64,000 nucleotides of DNA from Convolutriloba macropyga (taxonomy: Eukaryota), in assembly GCF_964194025.1 (NCBI RefSeq), contig NC_134471.1:24304001-24368000 (forward strand). The letters are read 5' to 3'. The position numbers and the translations under genes were made by a program. A model generated the notes under the pieces. That model did not search any database. It was not told the origin of the DNA and worked only from the letters and a program-made list of their open reading frames with translations. Below are positions 4,418 through 64,000 of the stretch, piece after piece. Numbering within the stretch: position 1 is the stretch's first letter; each line of letters begins with the position of its first letter.

Positions 4418-4424
4418 CCCCCAC

Positions 4425-8701: not shown

Positions 8702-8715
8702 CTGGGCCCATAACC
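8702..8715 (-). promoter_or_regulatory. Copia primer-binding site (half-tRNA-iMet type)
   Basis: GGTTATGGGCCCAG immediately after the 5' LTR, the PBS type of Drosophila copia and related elements. Confidence 0.85.
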
Positions 8716-11407: not shown

Positions 11408-11945
11408 AACCCAGCAGCCAGCCAGTGCAATCCGGCCAACCGGACATCTCTACAGCCTCAACCAGCCGACTTCATCGTTCCGCCAGTGGAACATCCAAGC
11501 CGTAGTCGACATCTACACCAACCCAGCAACCAGCCAGTGCAATCCGGCCAACCGGACATCTCTGCAGCCTCAACCAGCCGACTTCATTGTTCAACCAGTG
11601 GAACATCCAAGCCGTAGTCGACATCTACACCAACCCAGCAGCCAGCCAGTGCAATCCGGCCAACCGGACATCTCTGCAGCCTCAACCAGCCGACTTCATC
11701 GTTCAGCCAGTGGAACATCCAAGCCGCAGTCAACATCTACACCAACCCAGCAGGCAGCCAGTGCAATCCGGCCAACCGGACATCTCTGCAGCCTCAACCA
11801 GCCGACTTCATCGTTCAGCCAGTGGAACATCCAAGCCGTAGTCGACATCTACACCACCCCAGCAGCCAGACAGTGCAATCTGGCCAATCGGGCATCTGTG
11901 CAGCCGCAACCAGCCGAGTTAATCTTTCCGCCTGTAGAACCAGTC
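11408..11945 (+). repeat. 112-bp tandem repeat (about 4.8 copies) in the BEL leader
   Basis: Unit starts at 11408, 11520, 11632, 11744 and 11856 (AACCCAGC; ACCCCAGC in the last copy). Confidence 0.92.
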
Positions 11946-11957
11946 AACAAAGTGCCC

Positions 11958-14110: not shown

Positions 14111-14409
14111 AAACGTCACCCAGAGTCCACTTAAGGCCATCCAAAGCTCTTCAAAGAGCCCCCGAGTTCACTCAAGTTGATCTCACTCAACCCTCAAAGA
14201 AACGCAAGGTGCCCTCCAAGCTCACCCCAAAATTCGCCACAAAATTACCGTGTGTCCACCAACGTCATCCAAATTGACATATATCAACCCCCTAAGGTCA
14301 GCAATTTATCCCCTTAAGCCCCCAATAACATCCTAGATTATTGAATTAAGAATTCTAATTTGACGAATTTACCCCTCAAACAAACCAAAACATATAAAGA
14401 GCAACAAAA

Positions 14410-20400: not shown

Positions 20401-20808
20401 GAAGACGAAGATCCACTAACCCCAAATCATTTTCTTATTGGTCGAGCTTTCCCTAACATACCAGCCTGTGTGTTCAATGAGAACCCTTCACTGAAGACGA
20501 AAAGTTGGACGCAGATCAGACAACGATTGGAAGCAATATGGAAGAGGCTGGTCCGAGAATACTTGCCTACCCTGAACACCCGAAGGAAGTGGACCAACCC
20601 AGAATCAAAGCTTGAAGTCAACGATATTGTTTGGGTACTGGAAGAGTGGACTCCCAGAGGAATTTGGCCCCTAGGACGCGTGACAAGGACGTTCACCGGC
20701 CCCGACCAAACTGCTAGATCTTGTGAAGTAAAAACCGCTCTAGGTCTTCTAACCCGCCCAGCTGTGAGATTAGCACATGTTTTCCCGAAACCAATCCAAC
20801 CAGGTTAG
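14410..20808 (+). pseudogene. BEL/Pao gag-pol polyprotein with frameshifts, a stop and an RT-core deletion
   Basis: KFDGDPLKW gag, CYNCLSSTH and CRHCSRKHH knuckles, ALLDSCS protease, WYLPHHPV and SADIEAMF RT, LHVFTDAS RNase H, LSDNGSNF and APHFGGVWE integrase. Split into ORFs at 14410, 15810, 18452, 18910 and 19312. Confidence 0.92.
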
Positions 20809-20827
20809 GTAAGGCAGGCCCCGAGAA

Positions 20828-21093
20828 TGTTATCGACATCGATAATCTTCTTATTGATTGGCGCTAATTATTTTACCGCAAAATTGTCATAATCCTTGTA
20901 AACTAACAAACATTGATTCATAACACAAGAAATTTGAAACCAAAAGGGCACGTGACAACAATGTAATTAAGGTAATTTTGAGGACTAAGGTTTTGAAACA
21001 TCAAAGAACAGAGTAGAAAAATCCGAAAGAAGGCAAGTCGACGCCCCCCAACCGAGCACCAAACTATCCCCCCAGGAGGCATCGACACTGTCA
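20828..21093 (+). repeat. BEL/Pao 3' LTR
   Basis: Near-identical to 10686-10951 and followed by TSD GCATC. Confidence 0.95.
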
Positions 21094-38211: not shown

Positions 38212-38921
38212 TATTTTGTAGGAAATTAATTGTTTCAAAAATTTGGAGATAAAAAAATTCAGAGAAAATAATGACACTGAAGGACCTCTGTCGAATAAGA
38301 TTGGCAATCAACGTGTATCAGAAAGTGCACATTGAATTTCCACATTATTCGAAACGATCGGCTGGTTGTTAATATACACGTTGCAGAGGGAGCTTTGGTG
38401 TTTTTTTTATCAATTGAAAAAGAATACAGGTTAAAATATTTTAAATGAATGAAAATTGATTGTTGAAAAACTGATGCTAAATTTACTGATAGCATAAAAG
38501 TCTTGTTATTCATACATATGACACCTTGAAAGAAAAATCTCTCGTTAATGAACAAAATGGAATTGAACGAGTTCTGAGTTTTAGATATAAAGTAGCAATA
38601 GTATTAAAAAATTTTGTAAAAAAAGGATTTCATGAGGATGCAGGCGGTTGGGCTGACCAAATCTTCGATGCGAAAATTTCCTTTGTTACCCCCCTTAACC
38701 CGTAATCTAACTACATTGTTTTAATACGCCCCCATCTAAACTAATAAATTTTAAGTAAATAGGCTTTTTAAAACCGATAGTTAGATACTGATATACGCAA
38801 ACAGCTTAAACCTACTAAAAACAGGGACTTCGAAGTTTTTCGAAGTAAAACAAACAAAAAGCGACAAATTCTGGTTTTAAATGAACAAAAATATGCACTC
38901 GGAAATGTGAATTATTTGCAG

Positions 38922-39193
38922 GTTGCAACGTGGAGAACATGTCATATTCAATGACAATCTGCGCAGAGAGGTCTGCAATCGTGTCCGCTATCTCCCAGGG
39001 ATACAAAGCCTACCAGATGAAGTGCTTCTACGTGACCTCTGACCTCTCCAAGTGCATTACCCCCTGTGGTGCATGTCGCGCTGTGATTGCTGAGATGAAC
39101 CCGGAGGCGCGCATTGTTCTCGTAAACTCGGACGCCACGAGTGTCAAGCAGTTCTCAATTGGAGATTTGTTGCCATATAATTTTGAAATGTAA
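38922..39193 (+). CDS. CDA: Cytidine deaminase, exon 2 (catalytic Zn-binding half to stop)
   Basis: (G)CNVENMSYSMTICAERSAI...PCGACRAVIAE...LLPYNF: the CAE and PCxxC zinc motifs and C-terminal LLP of homotetrameric CDA. Confidence 0.92.
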
Positions 39194-40214
39194 ATATTTT
39201 CACACCGTTCACATTATGTGCTTTGAAGTGGGGGTGCTATGCGAATTCTACCGAGAGTTTAGAACTTTAGTCGGAAATTGTATACCTTTTGTAAAGCTAA
39301 TTATGAATTAATTCTGTAAATTTAACGCGCACCTTAATTAATATTTCTGGCTCCAGTTTATCATAAATTGTTTCCACAGATCTTTAACAGAATTGAATGT
39401 GAATGATAAACTGGAGACCTTTATTGAGTTAATATGGGATGGCTTTTAATAGATAGCGTTGATTTCTGTTATGGAAATAACGTTGCGAGAGAATCCGATT
39501 CAGTTCCATGATTCGACCGAATTAGTCAATCCAAATTCCTCAATATAATATATTTTATAGGGAAAATTTAGTTTGCGGTTTTGCTAGCAGTCACTTTGCG
39601 GTCTGAGATGCTTCCCAAATTAATCTTATCTCTTTCTTCACTGTTAACTCACCGTTAATATCTAATACAATAACTGTTCTCAATTGTCGTTATTCAAGTT
39701 ATCGCTGAAGCACCTTTTTTGAGATGCCCGTTGATATTAACCCATTTTATCATGAGTTGCACTACTCCAAGTATCAGATCATTAAGGTAAGTGAAGAGAA
39801 ATCAACTTGACAAATATCAGAAGATTAGTCTTATTTATAAGTTTCAGCGGGATATAGCATAAAGTTGAAATTTAAACTTGCTAAAGTTCCTGTATCGTTG
39901 ACAAAAAAATCACAAATGATGTAAGTAGCAATACGGTTCCGGCGAACAATCGTATAGGCACAGAGAAATGTATTCGTACAACTTTCTTAAATTTCAACCA
40001 CTAAACAAATGAGCTGTGTAGATAATTTGCTCTAGTAAAAAATATATTATACGTAAAATATATATATTTTAAAATTTTGAATTTTGTTCTGATATTCTGA
40101 GAAATAGTTCAGAAAGTTATACTTAAGCCGGGTTGGTTATTGTAGACAAATGACTGGGGAAAATATCGCTAACCTTGGCAAAACCCGGGCCACAGAATTT
40201 TGCCAAACTTATGT

Positions 40215-44219: not shown

Positions 44220-44364
44220 ATGGAGTCAAGTGAAGATTTTACCCTGGATTTATTTTCGAGTAAACCCAGCGGAACACCCAGACATTCCCTGAACGGAAAT
44301 AGAACTGAAAATGCTATCGAGGATTCTATGCAGACGATTGCAATTTCAAACCATCTGTTCGGAG
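44220..44364 (+). CDS. Putative first coding exon of the coiled-coil gene
   Basis: MESSEDFTLDLFSSKPSGTPRH...; the phase-1 donor is ambiguous (GAG|GAATCT or weak GT alternatives). Confidence 0.4.
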
Positions 44365-47006
44365 GAATCTGTTTAGTTTTACTATTTTTTTCCGATTAGC
44401 TATTTCGGGTCTTTTCCGTTTGTGCCCCCCCCCCGTACGCTATGCTCACCCCAGTTACAGAGCTTGTGTCATTACATGGTGAATCATTATGTAAAAATAA
44501 GGCACGTGCGTCTGGGGGGTTCGAAATAATATGTATCCACTAAGCTGGGTGGGCGGGAGGCATGTAATGACAAACGGAAAAGATCCGCTTTTTCTACACA
44601 CAGATTTATGACTGTTTGCCATACAAAAATGAGGGACAACCCATTACAATTGGCTTCAGAAAAAAACCCACGGCTTAATTAAATTTTAAAATGGGGGTTT
44701 ATTTCCTGTTGAAATCAGACTGGATTTTTATCCGTGAAGTTTTATATCCTAGACCTCATTACATTAAGTCATATACAATTATGGTTTTTAAAGATATTAT
44801 CACGGGGAGGTGGCACCCATTTGAACTGTTGACGAAATTACTAAAACTACTGAATAAAGAAAAACCATAGCCCCACCCCATCCCAGCTTTGTGCACATAG
44901 AACCCAAGCCTATAACTCACATAGCGCTGTCCTATAATTAATTAATGGGAGCTATAATGGGAAATACTGTGAAAGACTGCACAGTAAGAGGCGTGCCGTC
45001 TTTTCTTCCGTTTCAGTTTTACCCCCTATCATTTAACCCCAATTAATAGCTCGCCCCAATTTTTGATTTTTTCCCATACAATTTGCATTCAAAATTAGAA
45101 ATGCGTAGGGTATGGGGAAAGGGTGTTGAAATTCATAGATGAATCAATCATGCACCCTTAAACCAACGTTAAATTGCATTGCAGCAGATTCCTTTTGTGA
45201 TAGTAACTCATCCGTCAGTAATGGCGATGATGAGGTCATTGATGGACGAAACGCTGACACTGAGGTTCAATTCCAGCAGCCAAATCTAAACAGAAATTCA
45301 GGACAAACTGACGGTGAGAAGTGAAGCCGGATCCGTTTCCTAACTCCTCCAAGATTCGGGTTGTTCACATATGAGTAAGACCAAGTAGTTGCCCGGTGAA
45401 ATTAGTCACTCCATTTTGGAATATATACAATATAATGTCTATTCTGTTTCAACCCCCGGTTTAGTGGTTATATAACTTTGTTCGTGCTATCTTTTTAAAT
45501 TGTTACTTGTTATGTAACAATATATCATCATTCGTAAGTGAGGGCATAAACAAGACTCCGAAACAGAATAGCTCCTCAATACTTTTTCTTTGGCTTACTA
45601 AGTTTTGTTGGAGCCTCGCTTACTAAATGAAGAGACGCATTCATGGCAAAAATTAACACTAGGGTTAGAATAGCATGACTATCGTCACTGAATGCTACTT
45701 TCAATCAAAGCTCATTCAGTTTGTTCACTATTTGACAGCATACTTAAGAAACGATTGTAAGTACATTGAAAATCAAACATAAGGTGAAACTCAAACTCAA
45801 AGTCAAACTACTTAAACTACCTCTATATGTGTATTCCTTGGTTTGCACAAATACAAAATCAACAATACCATCGCATCATATTATGTACTAATTCGGTTGT
45901 TGGTATAGAATACTCGAAAAATTTCTATATGGTCGATATTTCTGCAAAGACATCAAATATAAACCAAAAATAGACATTATGGAAAACTGTTCATTTTTTT
46001 CAACATTGTTATCTGATGGCAATCAACGATGCAAATTTATATGTAAGGACACGTGACTAGAACTAGAAATTGAAATTGAAAAATTTCAACAAACTGGTTA
46101 AAGATCAGCTAGTCCTTTATTTTTTTAAACAAAAATAGAGTGCGTATCGAGGTATATTTCCTTGAGCGGTAAATTGGTTTTAACCGTGTCTTTTTTGTAA
46201 ACAGTCTTTGTGGTTGTGCAGTTTCACCAATCTGGACCTTTTGCAAAAAACAAACTTTGCTCTTCTCAGTTTTCTTAGGAACAAAGTTCGAAAGTAAGAG
46301 AAACTTTATACCAAGTACAGTTTCAATTGCTCTTGCTGGCTGTAGCGAAGTCACTTTTCATATTGTTGTTATGGAAACCAACTGAGCACTAGATTTGACT
46401 AATTAAAGTGAGCAGTTGAAATCCAATAAGGAAATTAATTAGAGTTCTTAAATTTTCGGTTCTTGATAAATTTAAGTCACATGACTCAATGAAGTTTAAT
46501 AGTTTCAATTTGAATTATTTGTTTTTTATAAAGATGCAAATTGTTGAACAGCGGAGCTGAACGATTAGTTGTTGGGACTAATTGAGAATCAAATAATGCA
46601 ACAGTCATCTACAGTATATCTAATCATACGGTTCACAAATTTTGACAGCAAAAGTGTAATACCAGGGAACGTGTGAAACTAATTAAATAAACTGGGTGAG
46701 GTAAAATTTTCCTTCTGATTTATAGAAGTGCCAGCTTCAAATAACCGTTACAAGCTTCAAATCGATGTGAAACGCTGCAAAAGTTTTAGATATAAAGCAC
46801 CATTAAGTATGAGTTTGACTTGATTTGATTATTTTCCAATTTTATTGATCTCTACTACTTCAAAAGAAATACAGAGAGTCGTCAAAATTTAATGACGGGG
46901 CTTGAAGATCAACTTCAGCTTTGGCAAATTGATCCGGGTTACATAATCCTCCTTCATTGATGATTTTTGAATGCAGATTTCACTTCTGCTGACTCAATCA
47001 TATATA

Positions 47007-47059
<53 letters not shown>

Positions 47060-50000
47060 TAGCTAGATTTTATAAATTACATTTAAGTACAGTATCTTTT
47101 CTTGACTCCCATTTTAATCAAGTTTGCTGTAAAACATTGTTCCGGTTCAATGGGAAACCGATCCACCGAATGCCCCACAAAAGGTGTTAATGATGGTGAT
47201 GCACTGAAGGATCAAGGCCAAAGAAGGTCTTCGGGAAAAACCGGAAAAAGTGGAACGAGGCGTCGAAGTAGTGGAAGTGGATCAGGCGGACGGAGGGAAG
47301 ACCTCGTCACAGAAAAATTGTTCTAACAACTTACGCACTCATAACAATTTTTAAGTTACGGAACTTAACCCCATTATGCTCTTGTCTTAGATCGTCTCTC
47401 CATCTCAAACCCCCCCCCCCCCCCCCAGATTTAAGAATTTTGAGAGCAATTTTCTAAAAAGTCCCTCAATTAACCCAACAATCAAAATTAAGGTTTAAAT
47501 TAAATTTTCCTTCATTGCAAAAAATACTATTTTTTCTATTGACTATAGGTTATTAAAGTTAAAAGTAAATTAAACAAAATTAGTGTTTGAGTAAAAGGCA
47601 ATTAATATCAAATGGAAAAGTTGTTTTTCACCAAGCGACCGCTACTCGGTTTTTTGGATACGCAATGATTCTGTGCCGTCACCAAATGTGTCCGTAGAAA
47701 GAGCAGCGGTGGATCTGGCAAAAAGAGACGAGGAAGCAAGAAACGAAGGGGATCGCGTCGGCGAAGGAAGTCTTCGACTAAGAAAACGTTCAGCGACAAA
47801 AGTATCATGGTCTTGTCACGTGACTACATTTTGGATAAGATGTTGATTGAAGAGAACGAAGACCATTTTACCGAAATGTTTGCGTTGTCGAAAAAGATTG
47901 ACCAGATTTCGAAGAAGGGAGTCTTTTTTATGAATAGTGTTTCGCACTGTTTTCTCAGCTTTTCTAACAAAAATTTTTTTCAATACGCTTAGACCGTTGT
48001 CATAGCAACCAGCGAATTTTCCTCGATGGTTTTAAATATTGGATCTTTTTGGTTTTTGACCACGAACCCCCTCCCCAAACAACGTAATGCTACCCCAGTT
48101 ACACCATTTAAAAATTGAGTGTTATGTTACAAGCCAAATCATTACATTTTAATACAGCACGTGCACTTGGGGTGTTGGGGGATTCTGACCTGTTTTTTAT
48201 TAGTTGCGTATTGTGGACTGGATTTAGGAAAAAAATATTACTAACTGGGTGTTGGTGTTGATGGCAGGCGTCAGCGTGCCATGAGGGAGTTGCGGAATTA
48301 GCCAGAGTTCTGAGCGAGAACCAAACAGGGCTGATTGTGGAGAGACTCAAAAAACAGATTGCAGAGTCATTTCTCGACTTCCAGGCAAAACACACAGCAC
48401 ACGTTTTAAAGCATCAGCATTAGCATGGAAAAGAAATAACTTCATTTGTATTTGTGTTGGAAATTGAATTGAACTGCAATAATTGACTTCATTTTTTTGA
48501 AATTTTCAGCATTTTGATAGTTGTTCCAGACAAAAGATTTTACATCCTTGCATTTTTATAATTTCTGGCAAGTTTTTCAATTAGTTTCAAGTATAGTTAT
48601 TTAGTTAACATGCTCCCCTTTTCAGCATTAGGTTTTCTTAAAAAGTAGGTTTTTCATTGAATTACATTAATTTAGAAGAAATCTCTCATTTCGTTCCGCT
48701 TTTTGAACATCTTCCTGTCACATATGTTCCTTCCTACCTTCTTATGAACAATGTTTGTCGATTTTAATTTCTGATTGCGAGTTCTCAGAATACTTAATTT
48801 GCTCGTCATATATATTTCTATTAGAGTGCGTTGTGTGTGTGTTTACTTACCATTTGCCACTTACCATGACTAGAGAAAGAGCCAGCTGAAACAGCAGGAG
48901 ATCCAGGGTCTGTCTCTTGAGAACAGCTTCCAAGTAGAAGTCAGTTTGCTAGCTAAGATGAACACAGAAAGCAAACACATTCGAGAACAGGTATTTAAGG
49001 CAATCAGATCTTAGTTATAGAGCAACCAGCGCAGTTTTAAATAAATCTCTTTTATGAATTTAATCAACTCAAACGCCGCGATTCTCTGTTTTGTTAACGT
49101 TACGAATGATTTTCGGACGACATTATGAAATCAAATATTTGGTAGTTTGTCATAAAACTTACGATATAGCTTTTTTAAAAAAATGAACTGTGTTTAAGTT
49201 CAATGAATGCCCTTATGCTTATTTGATAGGACATTCTGTATCTCTTATGTTTATTTTTTTTACTACAAACAACAATTTGTTTTTGATGTTTGCGGCAAGA
49301 GCCAGAGAATTCAAAATTGTTTTCTGACGCAATGCAAACACGCAGATTTCATGCCGGTGATGAAAGATACGGATCTTTTCCAGACATCACCAGTCATTTT
49401 AGATCTTGACTTCGTGCATGTGGTGTGGATGTAAAGTTGTGGAAAGAGTAGACAGTTACTGTAAACTACTCAAGTACATTTGGGAAAGAGAGGCAAGCGA
49501 GGTAGTGGCAAAACAGGGCTGGCTAAGTCTCAATGACCACACTGATAGGGTTAAGAGGATGTTGATACAGGACTCATTGACTGAAATGTTAGTAGGATTC
49601 CAAATCTAGGATTTCAAGAATTAGTTTATTTTTTCAACAGCATAAAGTGGCGAAATGTCCTAATAAACATATAATGGAAACATATATCGTAAAAAAATCC
49701 GCAAAAAATTCAAAAGTATGAGATATATTTTCGTCCTTAACAGGCAAAACAATCAAAGGCTTATTTCAAGTTAATTTTTACCAGCTCTTTAGGGGCCTGA
49801 TTTCTTTATTTTTTCGTACGTAAAAAATGACAGAGAAAATGGGCCAAAAATGACAGAGAAAATGACAGATACTTCAAATTTCTAATCAACAAAAAAGAGG
49901 CTAGTCAATTTTCGTTCGCACTCGATGTTCCGACCCGAGCTCATCTACATTTTTGACTTAACTGTCAACCAAATGAAGAGATAATCAAAAATAGATCTTT

Positions 50001-53000
50001 GAGTTTTAAAAAAATCGTTACACAAGTTACTAAAAGAGTTACATAATGTCACGCCTCATTACAGCGCTCAGAATATTGACCATTGATAAGACTACGGGTA
50101 AAAAAACAACAAAAAATGCAAAAACAAAAAAAAATCAGTTTTTGCGGCAAAAATTCAACATTTAAACCTGAAAGCACCTATTAACAACGTCAAACTAAAA
50201 GCACATAGAACATTAACCATGCAAAATTACTTTTTCGTTAATACAAAGCAGATGAAACTTTTTTAAATGAGACTGGGTAGCAAATTGATACAAGGAAGAC
50301 ATAATGAGGCGAAAATCAAATATCAACCAATATTTTTTAAACAAAATATTTTAATAATTCTTAAAACATTAGCTTTTAACAAAAGAAAACTCTTGATAAA
50401 ATCACTAAAGAAACTTTATGAAACCACCAAGTCTTTCATGGCTCACCTTGGCCTCATTTGGAAGTCATTGGGAGCTTTTATTACGCGATTGCGCTTAAAG
50501 AAAAGAAAAAGGAACAAACTTATTGACCACTAACAAAACTTTTATAAAAACGCATATTGTTCTACTCACAAAACATCTGTTACGACCTAATATCAATGGA
50601 CACGCTAAAGTTTGAATTACAAGGAAGTGGACGGGTCCTCTCATTGATGAGAATTAGATGCAAGAGTACAAATATAACAACAAATGAATTAATTAGAAAA
50701 ATATAGTAAACCTTAATGCTATTTGCTATAAACTTACTGCATTGAGTAAGTTCTTTCATTCATCCCTCAGTTAGATGTTTATGAGAACTCTCAGCATTCA
50801 CGTCAACATAAGGAATTAAAAAAAAGAGGCAAAAAACTCAAATAAAAATTGAGAAAAGAGAGTGTCAAAGCCATTAAAAATGAACTATTCAACAAAATTT
50901 TTCTCATTTTAAGTTAATTTTTAACAACAATAGGTTCTTTTTGTGTAACAATATGGCTTCAAAAAACCAACAATCATGAAAATATTTTAAAACCACTAAA
51001 TTTTTTAAAAAACCCGTACTACCAAAGTCATTAATTCTATAGTTTTCAACGGAAATAAAAAAAATAGAGTTATAAAAAATTATGCCTGATTTGGAATGCA
51101 AAATTTTTTCTTTAAATTTAGTTTATCAATTGGTTATGAAATTGCGCGAAGCCATTAAAAACTGCGCAAAGCCATTAAAACAATACGTTTTCTCCAAAAA
51201 CTTTATCAACAATCCTTTGAACGTCTTCTCCATGGCAGCGGGAGCTATTAATAATAGGATAAGGTGATAAGATTTCAAAAGTAACAAAAATATAAAAAAT
51301 TAACCAAAAATTAAAAAAATTATGGAAAGTTTTGGCATCGAGATTATAAGACAAATTTAGAAGATAGAAGCGCTAATCAGAAATTTTTTTGATTGCAGTA
51401 AAAAGGAGGGGTCTTGTCAATAGTGAAACTGATTTACAATTCACAAAAAGAATTTTAGGATGGATAAATGTTTTTTTCGAAAAAATATTTTAAAAGTCTT
51501 AACCGCCATTAGCTGTCCACTCAAATTACTAAACATGTTTGCTTACTACTTTTTAGCAAGCCTATTGCATTATTAGTCAACGAGTTTGTGCCATAAGACT
51601 TCACATTTTTTAAGATCTCAAAAAACCACAATTTTAAGAATCACAAAAAATGAGCTATTCCTTGAAAAGGAATTATTTGTTCATTGGGCATTATTTGACT
51701 GTAAATCAGGTTTTTCATTAACAGAATCTGGATTTGAGAAGTTACTAGTCCCTTACTGACTTGAAAAAATTTTTAAAAAAGTTGAAGTGGTTAAAATATT
51801 AGCTCTCCACTAGTAATCGATTTTTTTATAGTTAACTTCCCTATGAGACAACAAAAACTACCATTTTTTACGGCCGTTTTACAAATGTTTCATTTGTAGC
51901 AAAAACGTAATTTTGAATACAAAAATTACGCTAAAAGTGAGCAAAATCATGCCAAACATCACGTGTTCACACAAAATTTTAAACCTCGATGGCTCCTCGA
52001 AAAAAAAACAAAATTCAAAAAAATCTTTTAAATTCCGGACTCTAGTCTGGCCGTGCTTTTTAATGTCACTACTCACATTTCTCTACGATGAATATATAGA
52101 TCGGCCAAATTTGACTCAACGAAAAAAAACCCATTTATGCATGTAGTTCCTCCACCACAAGTGGGGTCGAAACAAACATGTTTTTTATTCTAAATCTCAA
52201 ATTGACTGTGGTATCAGGAACATTAAGCAGTCGTGGCATTTGATATCAAATTAGGCTAATCGATATCTTTTTCGTGCTAAAACAAAAGCGTTGTCGGAAA
52301 CATTAAAAAAGAATCTTTTAAAAATTCTCCAAGTGCAAGATGTTATTTTAAATCAAAACTTGAATATATTCCCTAGAGTTATATTTGAAATTTAAAAGAA
52401 ATTCTGATTGTTCCAATGAAGATTGACCGAAAAAATAGCAAAGAATTCTACTGTCAAACTTTTTTAATTAGATATTTTTTGCGCTCTTTCTAAAAGCCGG
52501 ATTGTTGAATGCATCTGCTCAAATACAGCTTGGTTTAGGCTAAGCTATTCAATGAATTAGTGAGAATAAACGAAATGATTTTCCAGTTATTGTCGTAACC
52601 AAAAAATTAAAGCTAATCAGATAGTTTGTGTCTTTTCAAAGCTCTGATTGTACGAATAACGGTACTAGAATTGAGTCGGTGCTCTGAATTGAGTCGGAAT
52701 CTCATATATAAACTTTAGTACTGGACCATAGTCTTTTCATTATGATTGAGAAACTGTCTTTAAATGTTGAAGGGATAGAACCTCAAAGAAATTTGAGCGA
52801 GACGCAGACAGGATCTTGGAGAGGTATAATGAGCTGAAAGACTCAAACGAGGCACTTGCAAAAGACCTATTCTTAGTGCTCAATAAGCTCAAACAGGCTA
52901 GTTCATCATTCATCTCCAAAGTAGCACTTTCACACGCTTTAAATCGCTTGAATTTGATAACAAGGACCGTTTGTTTCGCAATTAATTCTGGTTCCGTAAA

Positions 53001-56000
53001 TCATTGTCTACGTAATTCCGCAAAGTTTAGTGTTTGAATTGTTTTCCATTAAAATGAGTAACGTCTATAGCTTGTACCGCCTTTGAATAACAAAACCAAT
53101 CGGAAATTAAAATAAATGATCGCAGACTTGTCGCGTGAAATCAAGAATTGATGTATTTCAAAGTTAGAGGTAAACTCTTTGAAGTTTGAGAACTTTGCCA
53201 CGTTTTGAAAATGCAAGCTTTTAAAGCAACTTTTAACGAAAAAAGTTTGGATAGAAATAACGTATATAAAGAAAGAATTGATACAATTTACTAGATTTGC
53301 AGTTGAAATAGTCAAAATTTTGCGCAACCATTTCTTGTTTTTGCAATTTAATCGCGAATTTTTACCAGATATTTTTTGCCAGTTGAACTGAATGTTTTCG
53401 TTGTGATGGTATGGTGCATGTAATGTAGGTGCAAGATTTGTATGACTCGACTTCTGAGCATTACAAGGCATGTCAAGAGACACAACACATGGAAGCTGTC
53501 AATCACAACTTCACAGTTATACAGCAGCTGCAGCTGGAATTAAAAGAGGTTCTTTAAACTATTGCTCACTCTATTGCCACATCTATTTCTGAAAGGATAA
53601 CGACCATCCCGACACCAAATACGAAGAGGGGGTTATCCGAGGGATCCCCCCAGCTTAGTGGGTGTATATTATTTGCAACACCCCGACGCACGTGTCATAT
53701 CTTTATATAATATGGTTTACTATTTAGTGGCACGTGTTCTGTAACGGGGGTGCATAATGTACTGGGGGGGGGGGGGGGATCGGAAAAGATCCCAAAAATG
53801 CTATGAATGTTTGAAATAAGCTCCAATGGTGGCTCCTTATTTTAACTTCTGCGGCAAACCCCAAGAGCTCTACAATCATTAGTTCAATTTTTTGGAATTT
53901 TGTTCTCTTTCAATAACTTTATGGTTGCTTTGCTTACCATGAGTTTGTATAATAGAAAGTGAAGTGAAAATTGATTCACTCAATTTCCATTTTGAACAGT
54001 GGAACCGGAAGGTGGAATTCCGCGAGAGACAGAAGGCGGATCCAACGACACTTCAAGATCTGAATAGATCCATCGCACAGGAAAAAGTCACCCAGGCAGT
54101 GAATTTCAAATAAAAGTAAACAATAGAGTTCCACAAAAATTTTCCCCTTGTTTCCCTTATTTTTTGGGGTCTTTTCCAGTCTTACTCGAGATTACATTTT
54201 AGCTGAAACTTCATATGCTAGTTTCTCCTCATTTTGAAACTGTTTGATCTTTCGTTTCAATATTTTGGGCAGGTTCAAACTCGCTTCGAGCGGAGGACTT
54301 TCAACGTCAGTAAAAATTATGCTTTTAAACCTCAGTTCCTTGGATCTAAAAGTGAGATTAAATAAATGGGATTATTAAATCATATTAATGGGCTTATAAT
54401 CTTTTTTCTTTTTGCTGGCGCTATTTATGGCAGACACAATTTTTCTGTATCAAAGCAATCTTTAAAATCTTTTGTGCCTGTTACTTGACAAAATTGACAA
54501 ACTTTTATTGTTTATTTGTATTGTTTCAAAATGAAGCTTCAGTTCCACACTATTTGCTTCTTATTTTGTGTTGAATCACATCAAAAAGGAACTGCGTCTT
54601 CACTACTACACCAATAAATCCTGAGAGGATGTCATCGTGCATGTCTAATAATACTGCATATCCCAAAAAGAAGATCATTTTTACCTGCCTGTTAAGGAAT
54701 TTTCTTTACTCCTTGGTTGTCATTAGATTTTTTTTTGTTCTTGTCAGGTGACGTAGAATTAAACCAAGGGCCACTTCTCAATTACACGCAGTTTACCACC
54801 TTAATGAAAAAATACAACGATCAAGTAAAGTTTCTACATCAAAATTGTCAAAGCGTGCTTGGAAAAAGGTTACTCCTTAAGAATTTTCTATCTGACCTAG
54901 GTGACAATTGTATTTCGGGCTTCTCAGAAACGTGGTTGAAATCAGTTAACGATATTTCGTTTTGGTCGATACACTCAGAATACTTAGTGTCCTTCAGATG
55001 CGACCGACGTACTGATCTTCAGGAGAAAAATAAGGGCAGTGGTATTCTTTTGTTCGTTCCGAAGAAATTTCATCCAAAAGCACGAAATGATCTCGAGACA
55101 ATGTCAAAAAACCATTTTGAAAGTGTTTGGGTAGAGTGTAAAATAAACAAAAAGCCCGCGTTGATAAATTTGGCTTACCGTCCGCAAAAAAGCCTAATAA
55201 ATTTGTTTTTAGAACAGCTAGCCCTGGGATTAGATAGAGCAGCGACTGAAAAAACAATTTTTCTACTAGGTGACTACAAACTTAATTACTTTAATTGCAA
55301 TGATAGAAATCTTCTAGAAACTCTGATCTTGCCGTACGGTTTACTGAATTCAAATACAACTTAAGCAACAGGAGAAACATCAAGAACGAAGTCGCTAATT
55401 GACTATGTTATATGCGAAAAATTTTTATGTTCCCAGACACTGGACTCGATTCTGAAAAGTGATTACTTAGTCACGCTTACTTTAATTGGTGAAACCGTTA
55501 AAAACAAAAGAAAAGCTATCAAAAAAATTGTGTTTTGATAAAACAAAGTACTTTAAAAATGCTTTTTCCCTAGATGTTGGAAAGATAAATTGGAGATCAT
55601 TTTATTTATAAGAAAATCCTAAAATCATGTATAAAACTTGTGCTCGTCATCGGAAACGGTAATTAAAAAGCATGCTCCAAAAAAGACCGTCTTCATACAC
55701 CATGACAAGCCTAAACTGACGCTACATCAACAATGGATATCAAAAAACACAGTAAAAAAGTTTGCAAAACATCAAATAATAACAAAAAGAAAGTTTTGAA
55801 GCAGGAAAATGAAAAACATCTGCTAGATGTGTTTCAAAACTTAAAAAGTGCCAGAGAAAAGTGGAATTTTATCAACGAAATCAGAAACGCTGAAAAAACT
55901 CAGACAGAAATACCAAGACTCAAAAACAGTTTTGTAACTAATTTGACCAATGGAAATGATATTTCCAATCTTCTCAACTGTAAATTTTCAGCGTTTGGTG

Positions 56001-59000
56001 AATATTTTGGTAGAAAAGAACAGTATCAATTCTGTAATAATGCGGCACGCCTCACTAACAAATTTATATTCAGGTATACGACAACCAAGGAGATATTTGA
56101 TATATTCAACAATTTAAATTTTAAAAAATCGTTGGGTCCATCACTCATTCCAGCTTGGGTTTTAAACGATGCAAGAGAACACATAGCTGAACCTCTCTGT
56201 TTTTTGTTTACCCAAATTTTAACTGAACAACGTTTTCCTGACAACCTTAAGCGTGCCCACGTATTGCCCTTTTCAAGAAAGATGATCCTGAAGATCCGAG
56301 AAATTAACGACCAGTTTTGCTTACTGGAGCTCTAGCTAAAATTTTCGAAATCCTTCTTCAAGATCAAATATTAGTTTATTTAGAGAAGAATAAGTTGCTT
56401 GCAACAACACAGTTTGGATACAGAAAAAAGTGTCAACTATTGATGCTCTTTTATATTGCACTGAAAAAATCAGATATGATCTCAATAAAAAACATCGTCA
56501 CAGGAGCTTTATTAGACCTATCAAAAGCTTTTGGTACCATATCACATCCTACTCTTCTGCACAAAACTAAACTTTTAGGTTTTAGTGAACAAGTAAATAC
56601 AATTTTAAATTCTTTTCTGGAAAACCGTGTTCAAAAAGTCAGATTCTCAAAGTATGAATGAAATTGGATAGCACTTTACCGTGGAGTACCACAAGGTACT
56701 GTGCTAGGCCCACTGCTTTTCAACTTATATGCAAATGATATGACAGATGATACTGATATGAATTCTAATATAATCCGTACGCTGATGATACTTTTATCTT
56801 TTAATTCAATAGAATTCAATATTTTTGGAGACCCTAAAAGGAATAAATTCGAAGAATTAGTTGTTAGCGGATGTACAGTTATCGAGAAAAAAGTTGTGAG
56901 ATACTTGGTTGTTCATATTGACTGTAATCTTTCTTTCGATGAAATAAAAAATTAACTACGAAAAAAAGGCTGTTGGCATAAAGGTCATTTACTCCATCAA
57001 AAATATATTCCCAGAAAAAAACTAGATCTGCTTAACCGAACGCTCTTGTTTTAAGTCATCTGCATTACCCAACTGTTCTGTTCTCAGGTCTTAAAAATCA
57101 CTTCGAGTTACTCTAAATAAGCAACTGAACTGGGGATTAAAGACATGTTTCAAAAGAACCAAACCTGACAGGACCGCTGATCTCAAGATCAAACACAAAA
57201 TCTTACCGGTAGAATACCTCATAAAGTATCGGGTTATTAAATATTTTATAAAGCTTCTAAAAGCAGATCTACCAGTTTTCGATGAACTCAAGTTAGCCAC
57301 CCTAAGTGCTAAATTGAATGACCGTACAAACAAGCTGTCATTTGGAGCAAACAAAAAAACAAATATAATGCAAAACTGTTTTTCAAAAAAGCAATTGACT
57401 GGTGTAACGATTGGCCTCTCGCCTTGAGGCGGAATATCCCTAAAAAGCGGGCTCTCAAAACTACAATAAAAAATCAATTCTGGAATGATTTTCTAAAAGA
57501 CCCAAGGGTTTCTGAATTGAATTCTAATCTCAAATCTTTCAAGTTCAATCTATTTTGACTTTGTTTTAGGGCGGCATTTAGTCTTCTATGAAATGTTAAT
57601 TGGAGGATTAGCGTTTCTTAAAACTTTCTCTTTCCTCGAAAATGTTAATTGTAGAATTAGCGTTTTTAAAAATTTTTATCAGTTATAATTCATCTCTCTT
57701 AATTTGTCGATATTTTAGCACATTGTAAATTTAAAACAATTTTAAACTTTCACAATATGTGACGTTTGTTTCATTTAAACTTCTTAACAGTACATTGCCT
57801 TTAAACTATGTTCTGTACTTTATAGTTCATAGTCAAAGGAATTAACAATGTTTTTTTTTGTTTTTTTAGAGATCATAAACCGAGCAAACACTGAGTTCCA
57901 CAGGTGACAATTTTTTTCTCTTGATTGGATATTTAATTGACCAATTAAATATAGGCGATTTCAGATCATCTTTAATTCCACGCCGACGAAGTTGGAAGCA
58001 ATTTTTGTAAACATGGTGGTCTCTTTAATGCAAATTTTTCGCTTGACCGTTCTAAGACTTTTTGAGTGTTTTTTACGCCGTTGAATTTTTTTCCTGATCT
58101 AATTTTCGCTCTCATTCATGAGTGCCAGCAAATGAACTCAAGTGGCGGCAGTTGACAATCAGCTATCAAATAATAAGTGCGCCAAAGTTTTTGCATTTTT
58201 TGGTGATAATAGTATATGATGACCTCTAATGATTTCATTTGAAATCTGTTTCAGCAATTTAGAACAAAATTTTGGTTTCTAATGTATAGTATTTACAGAC
58301 TGCTGATAAAAATCAGCGCCACAATGTAATTTTAAAATTTTTGAAATCACAACAATGTGACCTTCCTGTCAAAACTGCAGATACGCCCTTCAAACCCACA
58401 ACCTCATCCCACTCACAACTTACACCGACTTCCACAACCCCACCTCCACAACCTACCACCTCCAATTTACCTGCCAACATGACCTGTATACCCTTTAGCT
58501 TACCAACACTTACCACTCACTTACTCTCCCAATAACTTGGCCGCGTTTTCGCTTTTGCTCTAGAACTTTTTTCCTTTTTAATTCTTGAGTGATTTATTCT
58601 CTTTTAATTTCTTGACTTTTATGCGATCTAAATTGCATTTTTCTTAAATAAATCTCTTTCTGTATGATTGTAAGACAAACGATTGTAAGACAGAATATCA
58701 CAAGGCCCCGCTAGCCGAGTCGTTAATACTTCACTCTATCACGCCTGAGATCACATTTCCCAACCCCTTACTAGTGGAACTTTTTAAACCTAGAAAAATG
58801 ATCTGGGCCACAGCCCCCTCTGAATTGAATCGCCCGACTTGTCGTTAAAAATCAATTTTTCCGAGGTTAGTCCGTTTGTTTTTTGTTTTTTTTTTAAGTG
58901 ACTCAAGTTATTGTTTTAATGATTTTAAGGTTAAAGAGTTGCTAAGTCAAATGTTGCCACTCTAGACTACTCACCGAATGGCTGTTTTATTTGACCAGAG

Positions 59001-62000
59001 AACGCACAAAAATATGAAATGTGAATGTTGTTTCTGCTGACAGCTCAATCGCGTCAACTGGCAATAGTAATTTGACCATGAGTACCGTCTTCTAATTTTT
59101 GTTTTTATTAGTCGCATTTATGTTGAATACCAACTGAAAAATCAGTTGTTCAAATTCAATCTTTGAGTTCTCTTTAACATTCTCTTGTTAATATGTCCTG
59201 AATTTCGATATTTTGTTTTAATTCTTTTTCCTGAATACGGAATGAGCTGAATAAAAGCAATTGGGAGGAAGTTTTCTAATTGTGGACATGTAACTTGAGA
59301 AAATAAATTCTTTCTCTTAAAAATATAATTATTAAAACAATGGGGCAAAATGTTAAGCAGTATTTTAAAATTTAATTGGAAGATAACTGAAAATAAAGCA
59401 TCACAATGTTAGCAAAATTTTTAAAAAAATGAACAGAGTGTACAAAGAATTTGAAAAACGGAAAAATGGAAATTTAGCTCTTAGTTTTAATAATCACATT
59501 TTTGTATATGAACGAAAACTCTAAAATTTGTCGCGTGTTGATGTTTAGCTTAATTTCTGCCGATTTCGTTTGAACTCGTTCAAAAAACTTAATCGAAACT
59601 CAAAATCAAAACTAAACAACTATTGTTCGAAAAAAAGTTCGAAAAAAATTACCCAAAAATAGGATCCACGCCCGGCGCATTTCCAAATCATACCACTCTC
59701 CTCTTTAGGGGAAATACAGCGAAAAGCAGAAAACACTAAAAATCACCTTTTTATGTATGGTTACTTCCATACTAATGTCGGGTCAGAAGGTTAATCATTA
59801 CTTTTCCTTAAGCAATACAAGAGTTACAAAACTATTGTTTTGGTGCACGAAGTTTCCGATGGCTTTTATCACAGTTTTTTGCATACTGTTTTTTGAGAAC
59901 GTTTTCCTTAGATTTTCGTGCTTCTTGCATCACATAAAAGTTTATTTTTGTTCCTCATGTTTTTGTTTAGTATTTCAAGCCGTTTTTGCAGCTCAAGTTT
60001 ACTGCCTCTTTCAATGACCATTTGTTTGTATGTACAAAACAGGCGAGACTAAATTTGAGAGTGAAGCAGTTAAGAGAAGCAATGTCCTACACAATGGAGA
60101 GCTTCAAACACAGTAACAAAGTTCACTCAGACTATTTGAAAGGGAAGTCACAGAAATTTGCACACATACATATGCTTTTCACGTCTATTAAAAAGGATCA
60201 AAGAGTTTGATTCTATGCTTTTGGTGGGAAGATAACTTTTGGTGGGAAAAAGTTGGTGAAAAATATTTAACGTATGGTTAAGAACTCAGACATCTTTTTA
60301 AGATGCTTGAGGCATGATTTTATCTCTTTTTTAAGTTGTTACTTGAATTAAGAGTATGTGTGCATTGTGATGTGATAGAAGTGAACGAAAAAACAATTCC
60401 GCAGTTATTTGAGACTACGAAGCAGCAAGCTAAAGAACTCATGAACGCCGATTTATTAGGTAAAAATCTATATTTGGCAAATACCTAAGGGGTTCATAAT
60501 ATTCGATAATGCCGCTTTCTTAATTGAGGTTTAGGTACGGTTTCCAGACTATTTCAAATCTGAGTTTGATATACTTGTTATCCGATATCTCGACGGCTCC
60601 TGACCGCGAATATAATCTTTCTTTCTCTTAATTGCCATTGATTTTAATTTTTTTTATTAACCCCAGCCTGATATTAATGCGGCGAACGCAAAGTAAGCCG
60701 ATAGGCAAGCAAGCCGACAGAAAAGCAAGCCGAAAGTTATGTAATAGTTGTTGAAACAATAAAGATTTCTTTGTGTTCGAAAGAAAGTTACTATGGAGTT
60801 TTTATTGATTTATCGAAGGCTTTTGATACTGTGAGTCATGAAATTTTGCTCCAAAAATGTTTTGCGTATGGTTTGAGGGGGAAAATTTATGACATTCTTA
60901 ATTCATATTTGACCAACAGACAACAATGTGTTTCAGTTAGCAAGCAGCGATCATCCTTTGAAAGCATTTTTTGCGGTGTACCGCAGGGTTCTGTTTTAGG
61001 GCCACTTCTGTTCTTGATTTACGTAAACGATCTGCCTGCTTTTTGTACAAACTGTAATGTAACTATGTTTGCTGATGATACAAATATTTACGGAAAGGTG
61101 GATGATGGAATTAATGATACAATAGAAAATGTGTCAGTTTGGATGGAATCAAATAAGTTAGCAATAAATAGAGATAAATGCAAGGCTATAAGTTTTGGTG
61201 CTACTAATGAGACACCTGAAATAAAAATTATGATTACAGCATCGAATTTGTTGACCACATTAAGTACTTGGGTGTATACATAGTTAGTAAACTGAGCTTC
61301 AAATCACACATTGAGAAAATAATTAGTCGGATGAATTCTTTAACAGCGGCAATCTATCAGTATATAAATTTTTTCAAAAGACACATACTAGTCCGATTAT
61401 ACAAAGTTTATGTTCAACCAGTATTACAGTACGGGGTTTTGTTGTATGGAGTGGCCAATAAAAGCGATCTTCAAAAATTAGAGTGGCGGCAAAGCATAAT
61501 TTTTCGTTTGTTATTTTCAGCTAAGAGATTCCAAAGCATTGACGAACTGCGATGGAAACACAAGTTGTTTTCTGTTAAAGAGTTACACATATATGAACTG
61601 ATAAAATTACTGTCAAGAATTCTCTGCCATGAACATCCAAGCAAATTATTAAATAACTCATTTCCGGAATTAATTGAAGAAAATATCCAAATAAATGAAA
61701 GAACTCATCTAGTCAAAACAAAATATTTGCAAACGAAGCAAAGAAACAAGTCACTCATATATAGTTTAACTAAAATGGATGAAAGTATTATTCAAAAATT
61801 ATGCTCATTTAGTGCACAGGATTTAGCAAACTTTTTACATTGTTTTAGAGACTCATTTATTATAGATAACAGATTTTTTGTTAGCCTTTTTTGGTAAGGA
61901 ATAAAGCGAGCTGCATTTTTTTTGTAAAATTGGCATTCTTATTAAACATTTTTTTAGGGGTTTCTAAGATTGATTGGAAAGTGGTATTACCAGGGTAAAA

Positions 62001-63838
62001 TATGATTTTAGAGGGTTTGAATTAACAAAAAATTAGACTTTGAGAAGAATTAAAAGGCATCACTTGACAGGTCTAGCGACCTTTTGAGGTCCTTTCGGGT
62101 TATGTTTTGTTGTTTGTAAATTTATAAATGCAAGCAATGGAATAAACTCGAGAACTAATTTATTATTATTATTATTATTAATAGTTATGTAATCTATCAG
62201 AAATAATACATTGTCAGCCGTTACAATCAATACTGCGCGTAGTATTATAGTGCATAATGTATTCCAATGCACCAAAGAAACAAAAATGCGTCAATATTAG
62301 ACATCTATTGGGTACGGGCCTCAGCAGACCGCTGTCCATGGCCATGCCTCTCATCCGCTGTAGGATGTAATCCGGAAATAGCGGGCCGTTTATCGCGGCA
62401 GGCGCGCGCCCACCGGCCTGCCAGGGGCAAATTAAAATACGGGTATCCAAAAACTTTTCGGCTTACTTGACCTCATTTTCAAAATTCGGCTTGCTTGCCT
62501 ATCGGCTTGCTTGACCGCCACCTATTAATGGTGATAATTTTCGCCATTGAGTTACGTTATGTGATATCTGCAAGGAGTGAAGCCCCTTCGTAAGCAGCTG
62601 GGAAAACAAGCGCAGTGTCTTGTGTCGAAGAGAACTGAGGGAATTGTGATGACAGCTGAACAGATGAAACTACTCGAAGAGAACACTTCTATCAATGCCA
62701 ACCTCAACGAATGACATTTCAAATTAAACCAATGATCTTATTCAATTTAACAGAAAACAAAAACCGCGCCTTTTCTGTTTACATTTTTGATGCCTTGAAT
62801 ATCCAATGACACACAACAAAGAATACCACCTATAGAGAAAATTCGGCGTTAAAAATGATCATGGTCGTTTTTTGGAACATCTCAATTCGAATGTTTGGAT
62901 ACCCCTCTCCCTTTCTTCTTCCTCCCCAAGGAAACAGTTCTTAGCTTTATATGCGCAAAATAATGAATTAAAGGATTTAAAAGAAAACAGACGTCTATAG
63001 TTCATGTAAAACGTTTAATGACAAAATCAACGTGTTATTATCATTCGTTGCGATATATCCAGTTTCTGGACAACGCGATAGCCAGAACCGAGTCAGACCT
63101 CAAATCCTGCAAGGTCGATTCCCAAAACACAATGCACACCCTTACAACTGGGAAGGATGAAATCGAGGAATTGGAGTGGATCAAATTGGAGGGAGGAAGA
63201 GTTCTGGCCAGATTGACGGGGTTGACAAAGAGTCTTCAGCTGACGATTCCCAACATTGACAGACATCGGATGGCAATGATCAGGAAGAGACAAGAGTATA
63301 GGTTGGCAGGAGATCTTGGAAATTATATCTTTGCTGCCGAAAATGAAAAAAAATTCGGAAAGGACTTGACATCTTACACACTATATATACACTATATAGA
63401 TCTTTCGGAGATCTTGCCTATCGATATCGATGGAGGAGTTATAGTAGCACATCATCATGTAGCAAATCATGAGCTGATTGTCCCCCCCCCCCCCCCCCCC
63501 CCTCAACAAGAATGCTTCCCTTAAGTTGAGAGACAATTTTCGCCTGATATTTCCCAATTAGACTTTAAATGTAAATATGCAATTGTTGAATTAACCTTAT
63601 AACGATACTGCTTTGAGAAAGAAAGCAGGCCTCAAGTTTAGCATACCTGATTACGCCACGGACAATTTCGAATCGTAGTCGATTTTTTCTACTGTCAGTT
63701 CTCTTTTTATTTTCTCTGCATTGTTTGGTGTAGCTCTAATTTGTCAGACATGCGAGTGACCCTTAGGAAGATCAGTGACACTGTCTCGGGAGACACAATC
63801 TGGCAACTCATCCGGGAACTCTGCACCAAATGGGCCAG
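44220..63838 (+). CDS. Multi-exon gene (about 17 exons, continues past the window): Ser/Arg-rich N-terminal region plus long coiled coil; family unassigned
   Basis: Phase-consistent manual chain: 44220-44364, 45185-45313, 46726-46806, 46875-46937, 47184-47295, 47698-47917, 48268-48384, 48874-48990, 49403-49587, 52779-52896, 53468-53548, 54000-54095, 60043-60142, 60379-60459, 62575-62708, 63063-63309, 63748-63838. Each is a GC-richer, stop-free island, and all internal ones follow an AG. Confidence 0.6.
44406..44587. mobile_element. MITE (TIR CGG(A/G)TCTTTTCCGTTTGT)
   Basis: 17/18-bp inverted termini. A related copy lies in the opposite orientation at 53641-53793 and a more diverged one near 48040-48230. 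Confidence 0.7.
45185..45313 (+). CDS. Exon of the coiled-coil gene
   Basis: GCAG acceptor; DSFCDSNSSVSNGDDEVID...QTD; donor ACG|GTGAGA. Confidence 0.6.
46726..46806 (+). CDS. Exon of the coiled-coil gene
   Basis: TTATAG acceptor; EVPASNNRYKLQIDVKRCKSFRYKAPL; donor TAA|GTATGA; phase 1-1. Confidence 0.55.
46998..47058. repeat. (TA)n microsatellite
   Basis: Run of TA dinucleotides. Confidence 0.95.
47184..47295 (+). CDS. Exon of the coiled-coil gene (Gly/Ser/Arg-rich)
   Basis: VNDGDALKDQGQRRSSGKTGKSGTRRRSSGSGSGGR; the phase-2 donor GAG|GGAAGA joins it to RKSSGG. Confidence 0.5.
47698..47917 (+). CDS. Exon of the coiled-coil gene
   Basis: CCGTAG acceptor; KSSGGSGKKRRGSKKRRGSRRRRKSS...MLIEENEDHFTEMFALSKKIDQISKK. 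Confidence 0.65.
48268..48384 (+). CDS. Exon of the coiled-coil gene
   Basis: CTAAC branch point at 48241 and GGCAG acceptor; ASACHEGVAELARVLSENQ...FLDFQ; donor CAG|GCAAAA. Confidence 0.65.
48874..48990 (+). CDS. Exon of the coiled-coil gene
   Basis: RKSQLKQQEIQGLSLENSFQVEVSLLAKMNTESKHIREQ; donor CAG|GTATTT; phase 0-0. Confidence 0.7.
49403..49587 (+). CDS. Exon of the coiled-coil gene
   Basis: TTTTAG acceptor; ILTSCMWCGCKVVERVDSYCKLLKYIWERE...DSLTE; donor AAT|GTTAGT, phase 2. Confidence 0.65.
49790..52170. repeat. Second copy of the AT-rich repeat family seen at 1-2455
   Basis: 52057-52170 is homologous to 2340-2455, including a terminal hairpin CCAC-AA-GTGG. The left boundary is approximate. 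Confidence 0.45.
52779..52896 (+). CDS. Exon of the coiled-coil gene
   Basis: TSKKFERDADRILERYNELKDSNEALAKDLFLVLNKLKQ; donor CAG|GCTAGT. Confidence 0.7.
53468..53548 (+). CDS. Exon of the coiled-coil gene
   Basis: ACQETQHMEAVNHNFTVIQQLQLELKE; donor GAG|GTTCTT; phase 0-0. Confidence 0.6.
53641..53793. mobile_element. MITE, same family as 44406-44587
   Basis: Its reverse complement shares GGATCTTTTCCG, poly-C, GTTACAGA, CACGTGCGTC and CCACTAAGCTGGG with the 44406 copy. Confidence 0.65.
54000..54095 (+). CDS. Exon of the coiled-coil gene
   Basis: AACAG acceptor; WNRKVEFRERQKADPTTLQDLNRSIAQEKVTQ; donor CAG|GCAGTG (or GT three bases downstream). Confidence 0.65.
54531..57560 (+). mobile_element. 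Degraded CR1/L2-group non-LTR retrotransposon (APE endonuclease and RT)
   Basis: SGDVELNQGP, FSETWL and LLGDY (endonuclease); LLDLSKAF, GVPQGTVLGPLLF and YADD (RT); many frameshifts. Confidence 0.85.
58704..58856 (+). mobile_element. Possible tRNA-derived SINE remnant
   Basis: Starts GGCCCCGCTAGCCGAGTCGTTAA (tRNA-like 5' end with an A-box); the B-box is degenerate. Confidence 0.3.
60043..60142 (+). CDS. Exon of the coiled-coil gene
   Basis: ARLNLRVKQLREAMSYTMESFKHSNKVHSDYLK; phase-1 donor AAG|GGAAGT. Confidence 0.6.
60379..60459 (+). CDS. Exon of the coiled-coil gene
   Basis: EVNEKTIPQLFETTKQQAKELMNADLL; donor TAG|GTAAAA; phase 1-1. Confidence 0.7.
60680..62522. mobile_element. TIR-flanked DNA element containing a LINE RT fragment
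   Basis: 23-bp perfect inverted repeat at 60695-60717 and 62486-62508; 8-bp direct repeat TATTAATG at 60672-60679 and 62523-62530. Confidence 0.6.
60760..61897 (+). pseudogene. 5'-truncated CR1/L2-group LINE RT fragment
   Basis: FIDLSKAFDTV, GVPQGSVLGPLLFLIYVND and FADDT; frameshift near 61240. Confidence 0.88.
62575..62708 (+). CDS. Exon of the coiled-coil gene
   Basis: GVKPLRKQLGKQAQCLVSKRTEGIVMTAEQMKLLEENTSINANLN; proposed donor AAC|GAATGA. Confidence 0.6.
63063..63309 (+). CDS. Exon of the coiled-coil gene
   Basis: FLDNAIARTESDLKSCK...MIRKRQEYRLA; proposed phase-1 donor CAG|GAGATC. Confidence 0.65.
63748..63838 (+). CDS. Exon of the coiled-coil gene
   Basis: TTGTCAG acceptor with only phase 1 open; DMRVTLRKISDTVSGDTIWQLIRELCTKWA; donor CAG|GCATGT. 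Confidence 0.65.
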
Positions 63839-64000
63839 GCATGTAGTCAACCCACCGATTTTATTCAACCCTTGTATGCTCAAGAAAAGGAGCCGCTACG
63901 TGTACCAGTGATAATATAAATTCAAGCTTGGTTATAACCATTTTGTTTTTCACCGGACCTAAAAATTGTTGCTGATTGCAAGTTTTCAATTACATTCCAA

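Follow-up and report, generated by a model that had tools for sequence, protein, structure and literature searches.

Probable introns with GC, GG and GA donors at a Convolutriloba macropyga locus, and an association with complementary intron ends

We describe a 64,000-nucleotide stretch of the genome of the acoel Convolutriloba macropyga (the window; RefSeq contig NC_134471.1, positions 24,304,001 to 24,368,000 of the forward strand) and, within it, the gene LOC142338330, many of whose introns begin, in the RefSeq model, with dinucleotides other than GT. The source chromosome is OZ077302.1 of the Tree of Life assembly of this species (GCA_964194025.3), which is 82,958,982 bp long in RefSeq. 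The window's cytidine deaminase protein led us to the NCBI locus OZ077302.1:24,297,055-24,353,193, and the window begins at position 6947 of that locus. Alongside LOC142338330 we consider the cytidine deaminase gene itself and a gene for an LPCAT-like acyltransferase, all on the plus strand.

LOC142338330 has its coding part at 44221-63842, with the last two coding exons lying past the window's end, and it encodes an uncharacterised coiled-coil protein. The region from 44 to 64 kb is AT-rich animal DNA, in which introns containing pieces of retrotransposons lie between short stop-free segments of the plus strand. A preliminary description of this DNA, read from its letters and open reading frames, had placed the beginning of the gene at 44220; the longest RefSeq product, with 722 amino acids (aa), indeed has a coding range that starts at 44220/44221. 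In an exhaustive HMMER search, the 82-residue exon at 63063-63308 matched two near-identical proteins. One is an unspliced genomic open reading frame and the other is XP_075244143.1 (558 aa), named 'uncharacterized protein LOC142338330 isoform X4 [Convolutriloba macropyga]', whose start codon is the Met at 47807. Compared with the window, XP_075244143.1 falls into 12 exon blocks, all with 100% identity, and its final two exons lie on contig L001 of ENA assembly ERZ25071359, a 95-96% identical haplotype that extends past the window's end. The reading frames of ten exons gave no Pfam family above threshold, which marks the predicted product as a poorly conserved, coiled-coil-like protein. A homologue search with XP_075244143.1 returned only XP_075244143.1 itself and, consequently, no orthologue is at hand to arbitrate the gene's junctions. 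An attempt to reconstruct the N-terminal exons from the length of the 722-aa product was uninformative, with 122 stop-free solutions, and we dropped it.

To locate the junctions, we enumerated all donor and acceptor pairs within 14 nt that reproduce XP_075244143.1, junction by junction, where a donor coordinate is always intron position +1 and a slash marks a splice junction. Exactly one solution per junction ends in AG, for all 13 coding introns of isoform X4, and six of these 13 introns have non-GT donors (two GG, three GC and one GA). The first GG-AG intron (47918-48267, 350 nt, AAG/GGAGTC ... GGCAG/GCG) joins ISKK to ASAC and is absent from the preliminary description. It is followed by a GC-AG intron at 48385-48873 (489 nt, CAG/GCAAAA), a second at 52897-53428 (532 nt, CAG/GCTAGT), in which both splice sites are identical in the second haplotype, and a third at 54096-60042 (5947 nt, CAG/GCAGTG), which holds a non-LTR (long terminal repeat) retrotransposon. 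The second GG-AG intron, AAG/GGAAGT, spans 60143-60378 (236 nt), and the GA-AG intron, AAC/GAATGA, spans 62709-63062 (354 nt). At the two GG junctions there are no GT solutions of any kind, and the GA junction, between ANLN and FLDN, admits no solution other than the one given. The remaining introns are GT-AG introns at 48991-49402, 49588-52772, 53549-53999, 60460-62574 and 63302-63733 (TAG/GTTGGC), one that opens at 63843 (CAT/GTAGTC) and finds its acceptor beyond the window on L001, and one whose GT donor, the thirteenth, also lies beyond the window on L001.

These junctions agree for the most part with what had been read beforehand. All 15 donor hexamers quoted in the preliminary description are present where it had put them, counted from +1. 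RefSeq isoform X4 matches its canonical GT donors at 48991, 49588, 53549 and 60460, and five of its eight non-GT donors (48385, 52897, 54096, 60143 and 62709) return as the sole AG-ending solutions. Two others fall away: instead of the GA donor at 63310, isoform X4 uses the GT donor 8 nt upstream at 63302, and instead of the GC donor at 63839, a reading that is also in frame with another acceptor, it uses the GT donor 4 nt downstream at 63843. The eighth opens a candidate GG-AG intron at 47296-47697 (GAG/GGAAGA ... CCGTAG/A), a reading of the sequence that is phase-compatible with the only acceptor before exon 5. This donor, like those at 45314 and 46807, is upstream of the isoform X4 start codon and so outside the threaded protein. 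The estimate that roughly half of the donors are non-GT holds for LOC142338330. Use of the GT donors at 60113, 54099 or 52921, which had been named as evidence that would speak against non-GT splicing, is not seen in the RefSeq protein.

The cytidine deaminase gene supplies a seventh non-GT intron. The last base of exon 1 (3055-3208) opens a Gly codon; exon 2 (38922-39193) runs from CNVEN to the stop codon. Between them lies a 35.7-kb GC-AG intron at 3209-38921 (AAG/GCACGT ... TTTGCAG/GT), which is full of retrotransposons. The split codon, G/GT, encodes Gly, and the joined protein reads ...EYIQG CNVEN.... When aligned with mouse CDA (1zab), exon 1 reaches residue 51, the split Gly is residue 52 and exon 2 starts from residue 53, with no residue missing or added; a Bacillus CDA from the PDB fits exon 1, the split Gly and exon 2 equally exactly. 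Use of the GT located four bases 3′ of the donor would shift the frame. The RefSeq protein contains the same junction (...EYIQGCNVEN...), in agreement with the preliminary description, which had named AAG/GCACGT at 3209 as the donor. Because the homology is residue-exact, this intron does not depend on the annotation pipeline, and its GC donor is independently confirmed.

Several further observations concern this gene. We set aside an intronless cytidine deaminase (P0011), because the 3-kb contig that carries it proved to be a scaffold of unknown origin from an environmental metagenome. Just upstream of the window, on the same strand (L002, 1-6803), a 155-aa paralogue forms a tandem pair with the cytidine deaminase; its isoform X2 (P0012) is 63% identical over exon 2. 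Inside the 35.7-kb intron, a Copia-like LTR retrotransposon at 3807-9309 looks like a recent insertion, with gag-protease-integrase-reverse transcriptase frames on the minus strand (4396-8448) and LTRs that are 99% identical and spaced 4909 bp apart. The same intron contains a large GC-rich element (up to 59%) at 11300-21000, with plus-strand frames of up to 928 aa and a repeated N-terminal segment rich in proline, serine and threonine, which is presumably another LTR retrotransposon.

The seven non-GT donors read AAG/GGAGTC, CAG/GCAAAA, CAG/GCTAGT, CAG/GCAGTG, AAG/GGAAGT, AAC/GAATGA and AAG/GCACGT. An exonic AG occupies -2/-1 in six of the seven, the exception being AAC/GAATGA, which bears out the earlier remark that nearly all such donors follow an exonic AG; A is present at +3 in six of the seven, with GCTAGT the exception. 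The GT donors of LOC142338330 are looser in context (AAT/GTTAGT, CAT/GTAGTC, CTG/GTCAAT and others). Every intron that we examined has G at +1 and an AG acceptor. GC-AG introns make up about 1% of introns in most eukaryotes; GC donors account for 4 of the 19 introns scored here, alongside the GG and GA donors. Across the approximately 74 kb that we scored, 7 of 19 introns are non-GT, and they are concentrated in the lineage-specific gene.

Non-GT donors had been called pervasive, and that word suits LOC142338330 better than its surroundings. All five donors scored in the nearby gene for the LPCAT-like acyltransferase (493 aa) are GT, beginning with a canonical AAG/GTAAGT at 39787 after its first exon (39724-39786). 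The relaxation of the donor is therefore not uniform, and 'pervasive' applies locally. LOC142338330 lies wholly inside the first intron of this gene (at least 29 kb), on the same strand; the second LPCAT-like exon is found about 4.6 kb beyond the window's end, and it and the exons after it are on L001 (15611-17740).

We then compared the two ends of each intron, searching for the longest perfect Watson-Crick complement between the first 50 nt (-5 to +45) and the last 50 nt (-45 to +5) of 17 introns, seven of them non-GT and ten GT. The longest complements were 6, 9, 6, 7, 11, 10 and 9 bp in the non-GT introns and 5-6 bp in the GT introns. A perfect complement of 9-11 bp is thus present in four of the seven non-GT introns and in none of the ten GT introns. 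When 20,000 pairs of windows were drawn at random from this region, 1.8% of them had a complement of at least 9 bp (P = 0.018), so that the excess has a binomial p of 3e-6, and the difference in length between the two groups of introns has a Mann-Whitney p of 9e-4. The longest stem is found in the GG intron at 60143, where 60159-60169 pairs with 60354-60364 over 11 bp. In the GA intron, the 5′ splice site itself (62705-62714) is perfectly complementary over 10 bp to 63041-63050, which is located 13-22 nt before the acceptor. The GC intron at 48385 has an AC/GT-rich stem of 9 bp (48388-48396 with 48836-48844), the cytidine deaminase intron also has 9 bp (3213-3221 with 38878-38886), and the GC intron at 54096 pairs its 5′ splice site (54094-54100) with 60001-60007 over 7 bp. 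In three of the non-GT introns, the 5′ arm adjoins the splice site or overlaps with it. In RNAfold predictions, these stems close both short introns (236-nt GG and 354-nt GA) in the centroid and minimum-energy structures alike, and the fold of the 236-nt intron has a z-score of -4.5 relative to shuffled sequences. With a small sample from a single locus, we regard the excess pairing between the ends of non-GT introns as a strong lead rather than a settled rule. This association with non-GT donors is new here.

The letters at these sites recur in independent DNA contigs and in the second haplotype. The contigs, assembled from DNA runs, reproduce 59900-60706 and 62498-64000 with no difference at any donor, which includes the letters at 60143, 62709 and 63302-63843. 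The L001 haplotype is identical to the window at every donor and acceptor from 49588 to 63843 and in the arms of the main stems; its identity to the window is 99.2% in exons and 96.6% elsewhere. One DNA run (X5) has a third allele at 59943-60183, with nine substitutions around exon 12 that include positions +7/+8 of the GG donor; the change at +7/+8 is the one present in L001.

Mobile elements are also found in the introns of LOC142338330. A degenerate non-LTR retrotransposon, with endonuclease and reverse transcriptase frames interrupted by stops, is located at 54507-57864 within the GC-AG intron at 54096 and is missing from L001, indicating an insertion polymorphism. Two inverted copies of an approximately 150-bp element resembling a miniature inverted-repeat transposable element (MITE), 76% identical and with poly-C/poly-G tracts, sit in introns of the gene at 44403-44552 and 53646-53796, and a visually similar element is located near 48050-48200.

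Taken together, we consider it likely that these are real spliceosomal introns with GC, GG or GA donors and a normal AG end, in which position +2 tolerates any base as long as the donor is otherwise good. The tolerance at +2 is suggested by the exonic AG and the A at +3, each kept in six of seven donors. The major (U2-type) spliceosome would probably recognise such donors through their remaining consensus and carry out the cutting. In most non-GT introns, the first 45 nt or so may pair through a short perfect complement with a segment 13-45 nt before the acceptor. Such a stem would bring both splice sites together and could aid a weak donor; alternatively, it may be a relic of the intron's origin. 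We extend this reading to the whole lineage only tentatively: acoels, an early-branching bilaterian lineage, might possess a distinct genome-wide class of non-GT introns in which stem-assisted pairing of the splice sites compensates for weak recognition by U1.

Several observations weigh against the proposal of real non-GT introns. In a rival reading, RefSeq has placed the junctions wrongly, through misaligned reads or the chaining of models; nearby in-phase GT donors are used, and the protein gains or loses a few residues. GT donors in the right phase are present at 48403 (+18), 52921 (+24), 60113 (-30) and 54099 (+3) and, with such donors 3-30 nt from several non-GT sites, the open reading frame alone cannot decide between them; nor can homology arbitrate in a gene as poorly conserved as LOC142338330. 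Transcript-level support for its junctions is the RefSeq model. The four sequencing runs are DNA, with an even depth of 35-60 in introns and exons alike and of thousands in repeats, and therefore say nothing about splicing. Gnomon is not known to put in GG or GA introns, or to call several isoforms, unless transcript alignments back them, and the RefSeq junctions of this gene presumably rest on RNA-seq. Further points concern the introns themselves: the GA donor is preceded by AAC and not by AG, the LPCAT-like gene uses GT throughout, the end comparison covers 17 introns of one locus, two stems have a biased composition (AC/GT-rich or AT-rich) and, in L001, a two-base variant in one outer stem is accompanied by no compensating change. 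We nevertheless regard an annotation artefact as unlikely. The preliminary description, drawn from the sequence alone, and RefSeq arrived independently at the same five sites, and the name of XP_075244143.1 carries no low-quality flag. The GA junction has no GT nearby and is followed by TGA three bases on, and the GC junction of the cytidine deaminase is fixed by homology. The non-GT sites have AG/G.A in common and stand unaltered in a diverged haplotype, and their excess of end pairing marks the non-GT introns as a real class.

A different origin for the paired ends is possible, if somewhat doubtful, and it overlaps with the explanation that we prefer: the introns may derive from transposons, in which case the end pairing is a relic of terminal inverted repeats and the odd donors are merely tolerated. 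Such an origin from terminal-inverted-repeat transposons has been proposed for the non-canonical introns of larvacean tunicates. Short inverted repeats lie near both ends in 4-5 of the 7 non-GT introns, and the genome is rich in MITE-like elements and retroelements. Against this, when each short intron was compared by BLAST with the window and an extra 9.5 kb (approximately 74 kb in all), no second copy of a non-GT intron turned up, nor any long terminal repeat, in a sample far too small to exclude a family; in the three cases where the 5′ arm is at the splice site, it is not at the end of an element, and all acceptors are AG. It is highly improbable that some other mechanism is at work, be it the minor spliceosome acting on U12-type introns, editing of the +2 base in unspliced RNA or excision from the DNA. 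These are known routes to apparent non-GT junctions, with nothing specific in their favour. None of the seven donors resembles the U12 consensus RTATCCTT, and an A or G cannot be edited to U, so that we rejected both readings on the donor sequences. Intron depth equals exon depth in the contigs of the four runs, which contain no intron-less DNA form over 59900-60706 and 62498-64000, and this argues against DNA-level removal.

High rates of non-GT donors are found in dinoflagellates. Among animals, the closest known case to the acoel locus is the copepod Eurytemora affinis, in which approximately 12% of donors are GA or GG, an exonic AG and an A at +3 are obligate and the 5′ end of U1 is unchanged (Robertson 2017, PMC5714493). 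In both, introns of the U2 type (probably so in the acoel) begin with G and a non-T base and end in AG, they favour an exonic AG and an A at +3, and they are mixed with GT introns in the same genes and needed for a full-length protein (PMC5714493). The two differ in phylum, the present case belonging to Acoela (Xenacoelomorpha), and also in composition: at the acoel locus GC is as common as GA and GG together, 6 of the 13 introns of one gene are non-GT as compared to approximately 12% GA/GG, and one donor, the GA, has no exonic AG before it. Complementary intron ends have not been reported in the copepod. Its junctions were demonstrated with RNA-seq reads, whereas those described here come from the RefSeq model, with one supported by homology. 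The preliminary description had raised the possibility of altered recognition by U1, U6 and U5; such a change is not required, because the U1 5′ end of Eurytemora is unchanged at 12% GA/GG donors. An Rfam search of the window and L001 detected no small nuclear RNA (snRNA) and no other family.

The larvaceans Fritillaria borealis and Oikopleura dioica break the GT rule on a large scale while retaining splicing, and changes in snRNA modification and in U2AF have been proposed as enablers (Nucleic Acids Research 2026, PMC13326754). GT/AG is missing from 95% of Fritillaria introns, with variation at either end (PMC13326754), while the acoel introns examined here all keep G at +1 and AG at the acceptor. 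The four acoel GC donors resemble those of ordinary GC-AG introns, in that they follow AG and are consensus-like except at +2. Pairing across an intron also has precedents. In some yeast introns, the region of the 5′ splice site pairs with that of the branch point. In zebrafish, structured (AC)m-(GT)n introns have complementary end segments that form a bridging stem and pair the splice sites (Lin et al. 2016, PMC4691745). Two of the acoel stems are likewise AC-rich on the 5′ side and GT-rich on the 3′ side (48388/48836 and 60159/60354). Unlike the fish stems, the acoel stems are short, unique sequences of 7-11 bp and not long dinucleotide repeats, and they are tied to non-GT donors.

Full-text literature searches for GC-AG, GA-AG or other non-canonical introns and splice sites in acoels retrieved nothing relevant. 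The Symsagittifera genome paper makes no mention of non-GT donors, the C. macropyga genome note describes neither annotation nor splicing, and two further papers that use Convolutriloba genomes do not mention splicing or introns. If RNA data confirm the junctions, Acoela would join Eurytemora, the larvacean tunicates and the dinoflagellates as lineages in which GT is optional, and would provide the first case that we found reported for Xenacoelomorpha. Gene predictors that accept only GT or GC donors would then cut acoel genes short or break them up, a problem already met in the copepod, and studies of bilaterian origins and of regeneration make heavy use of acoel gene sets. High rates of non-GT donors are already known in other lineages, and it is the association with end pairing that could add more: it offers a testable idea for how weak donors are recognised and, perhaps, for how such introns originate.

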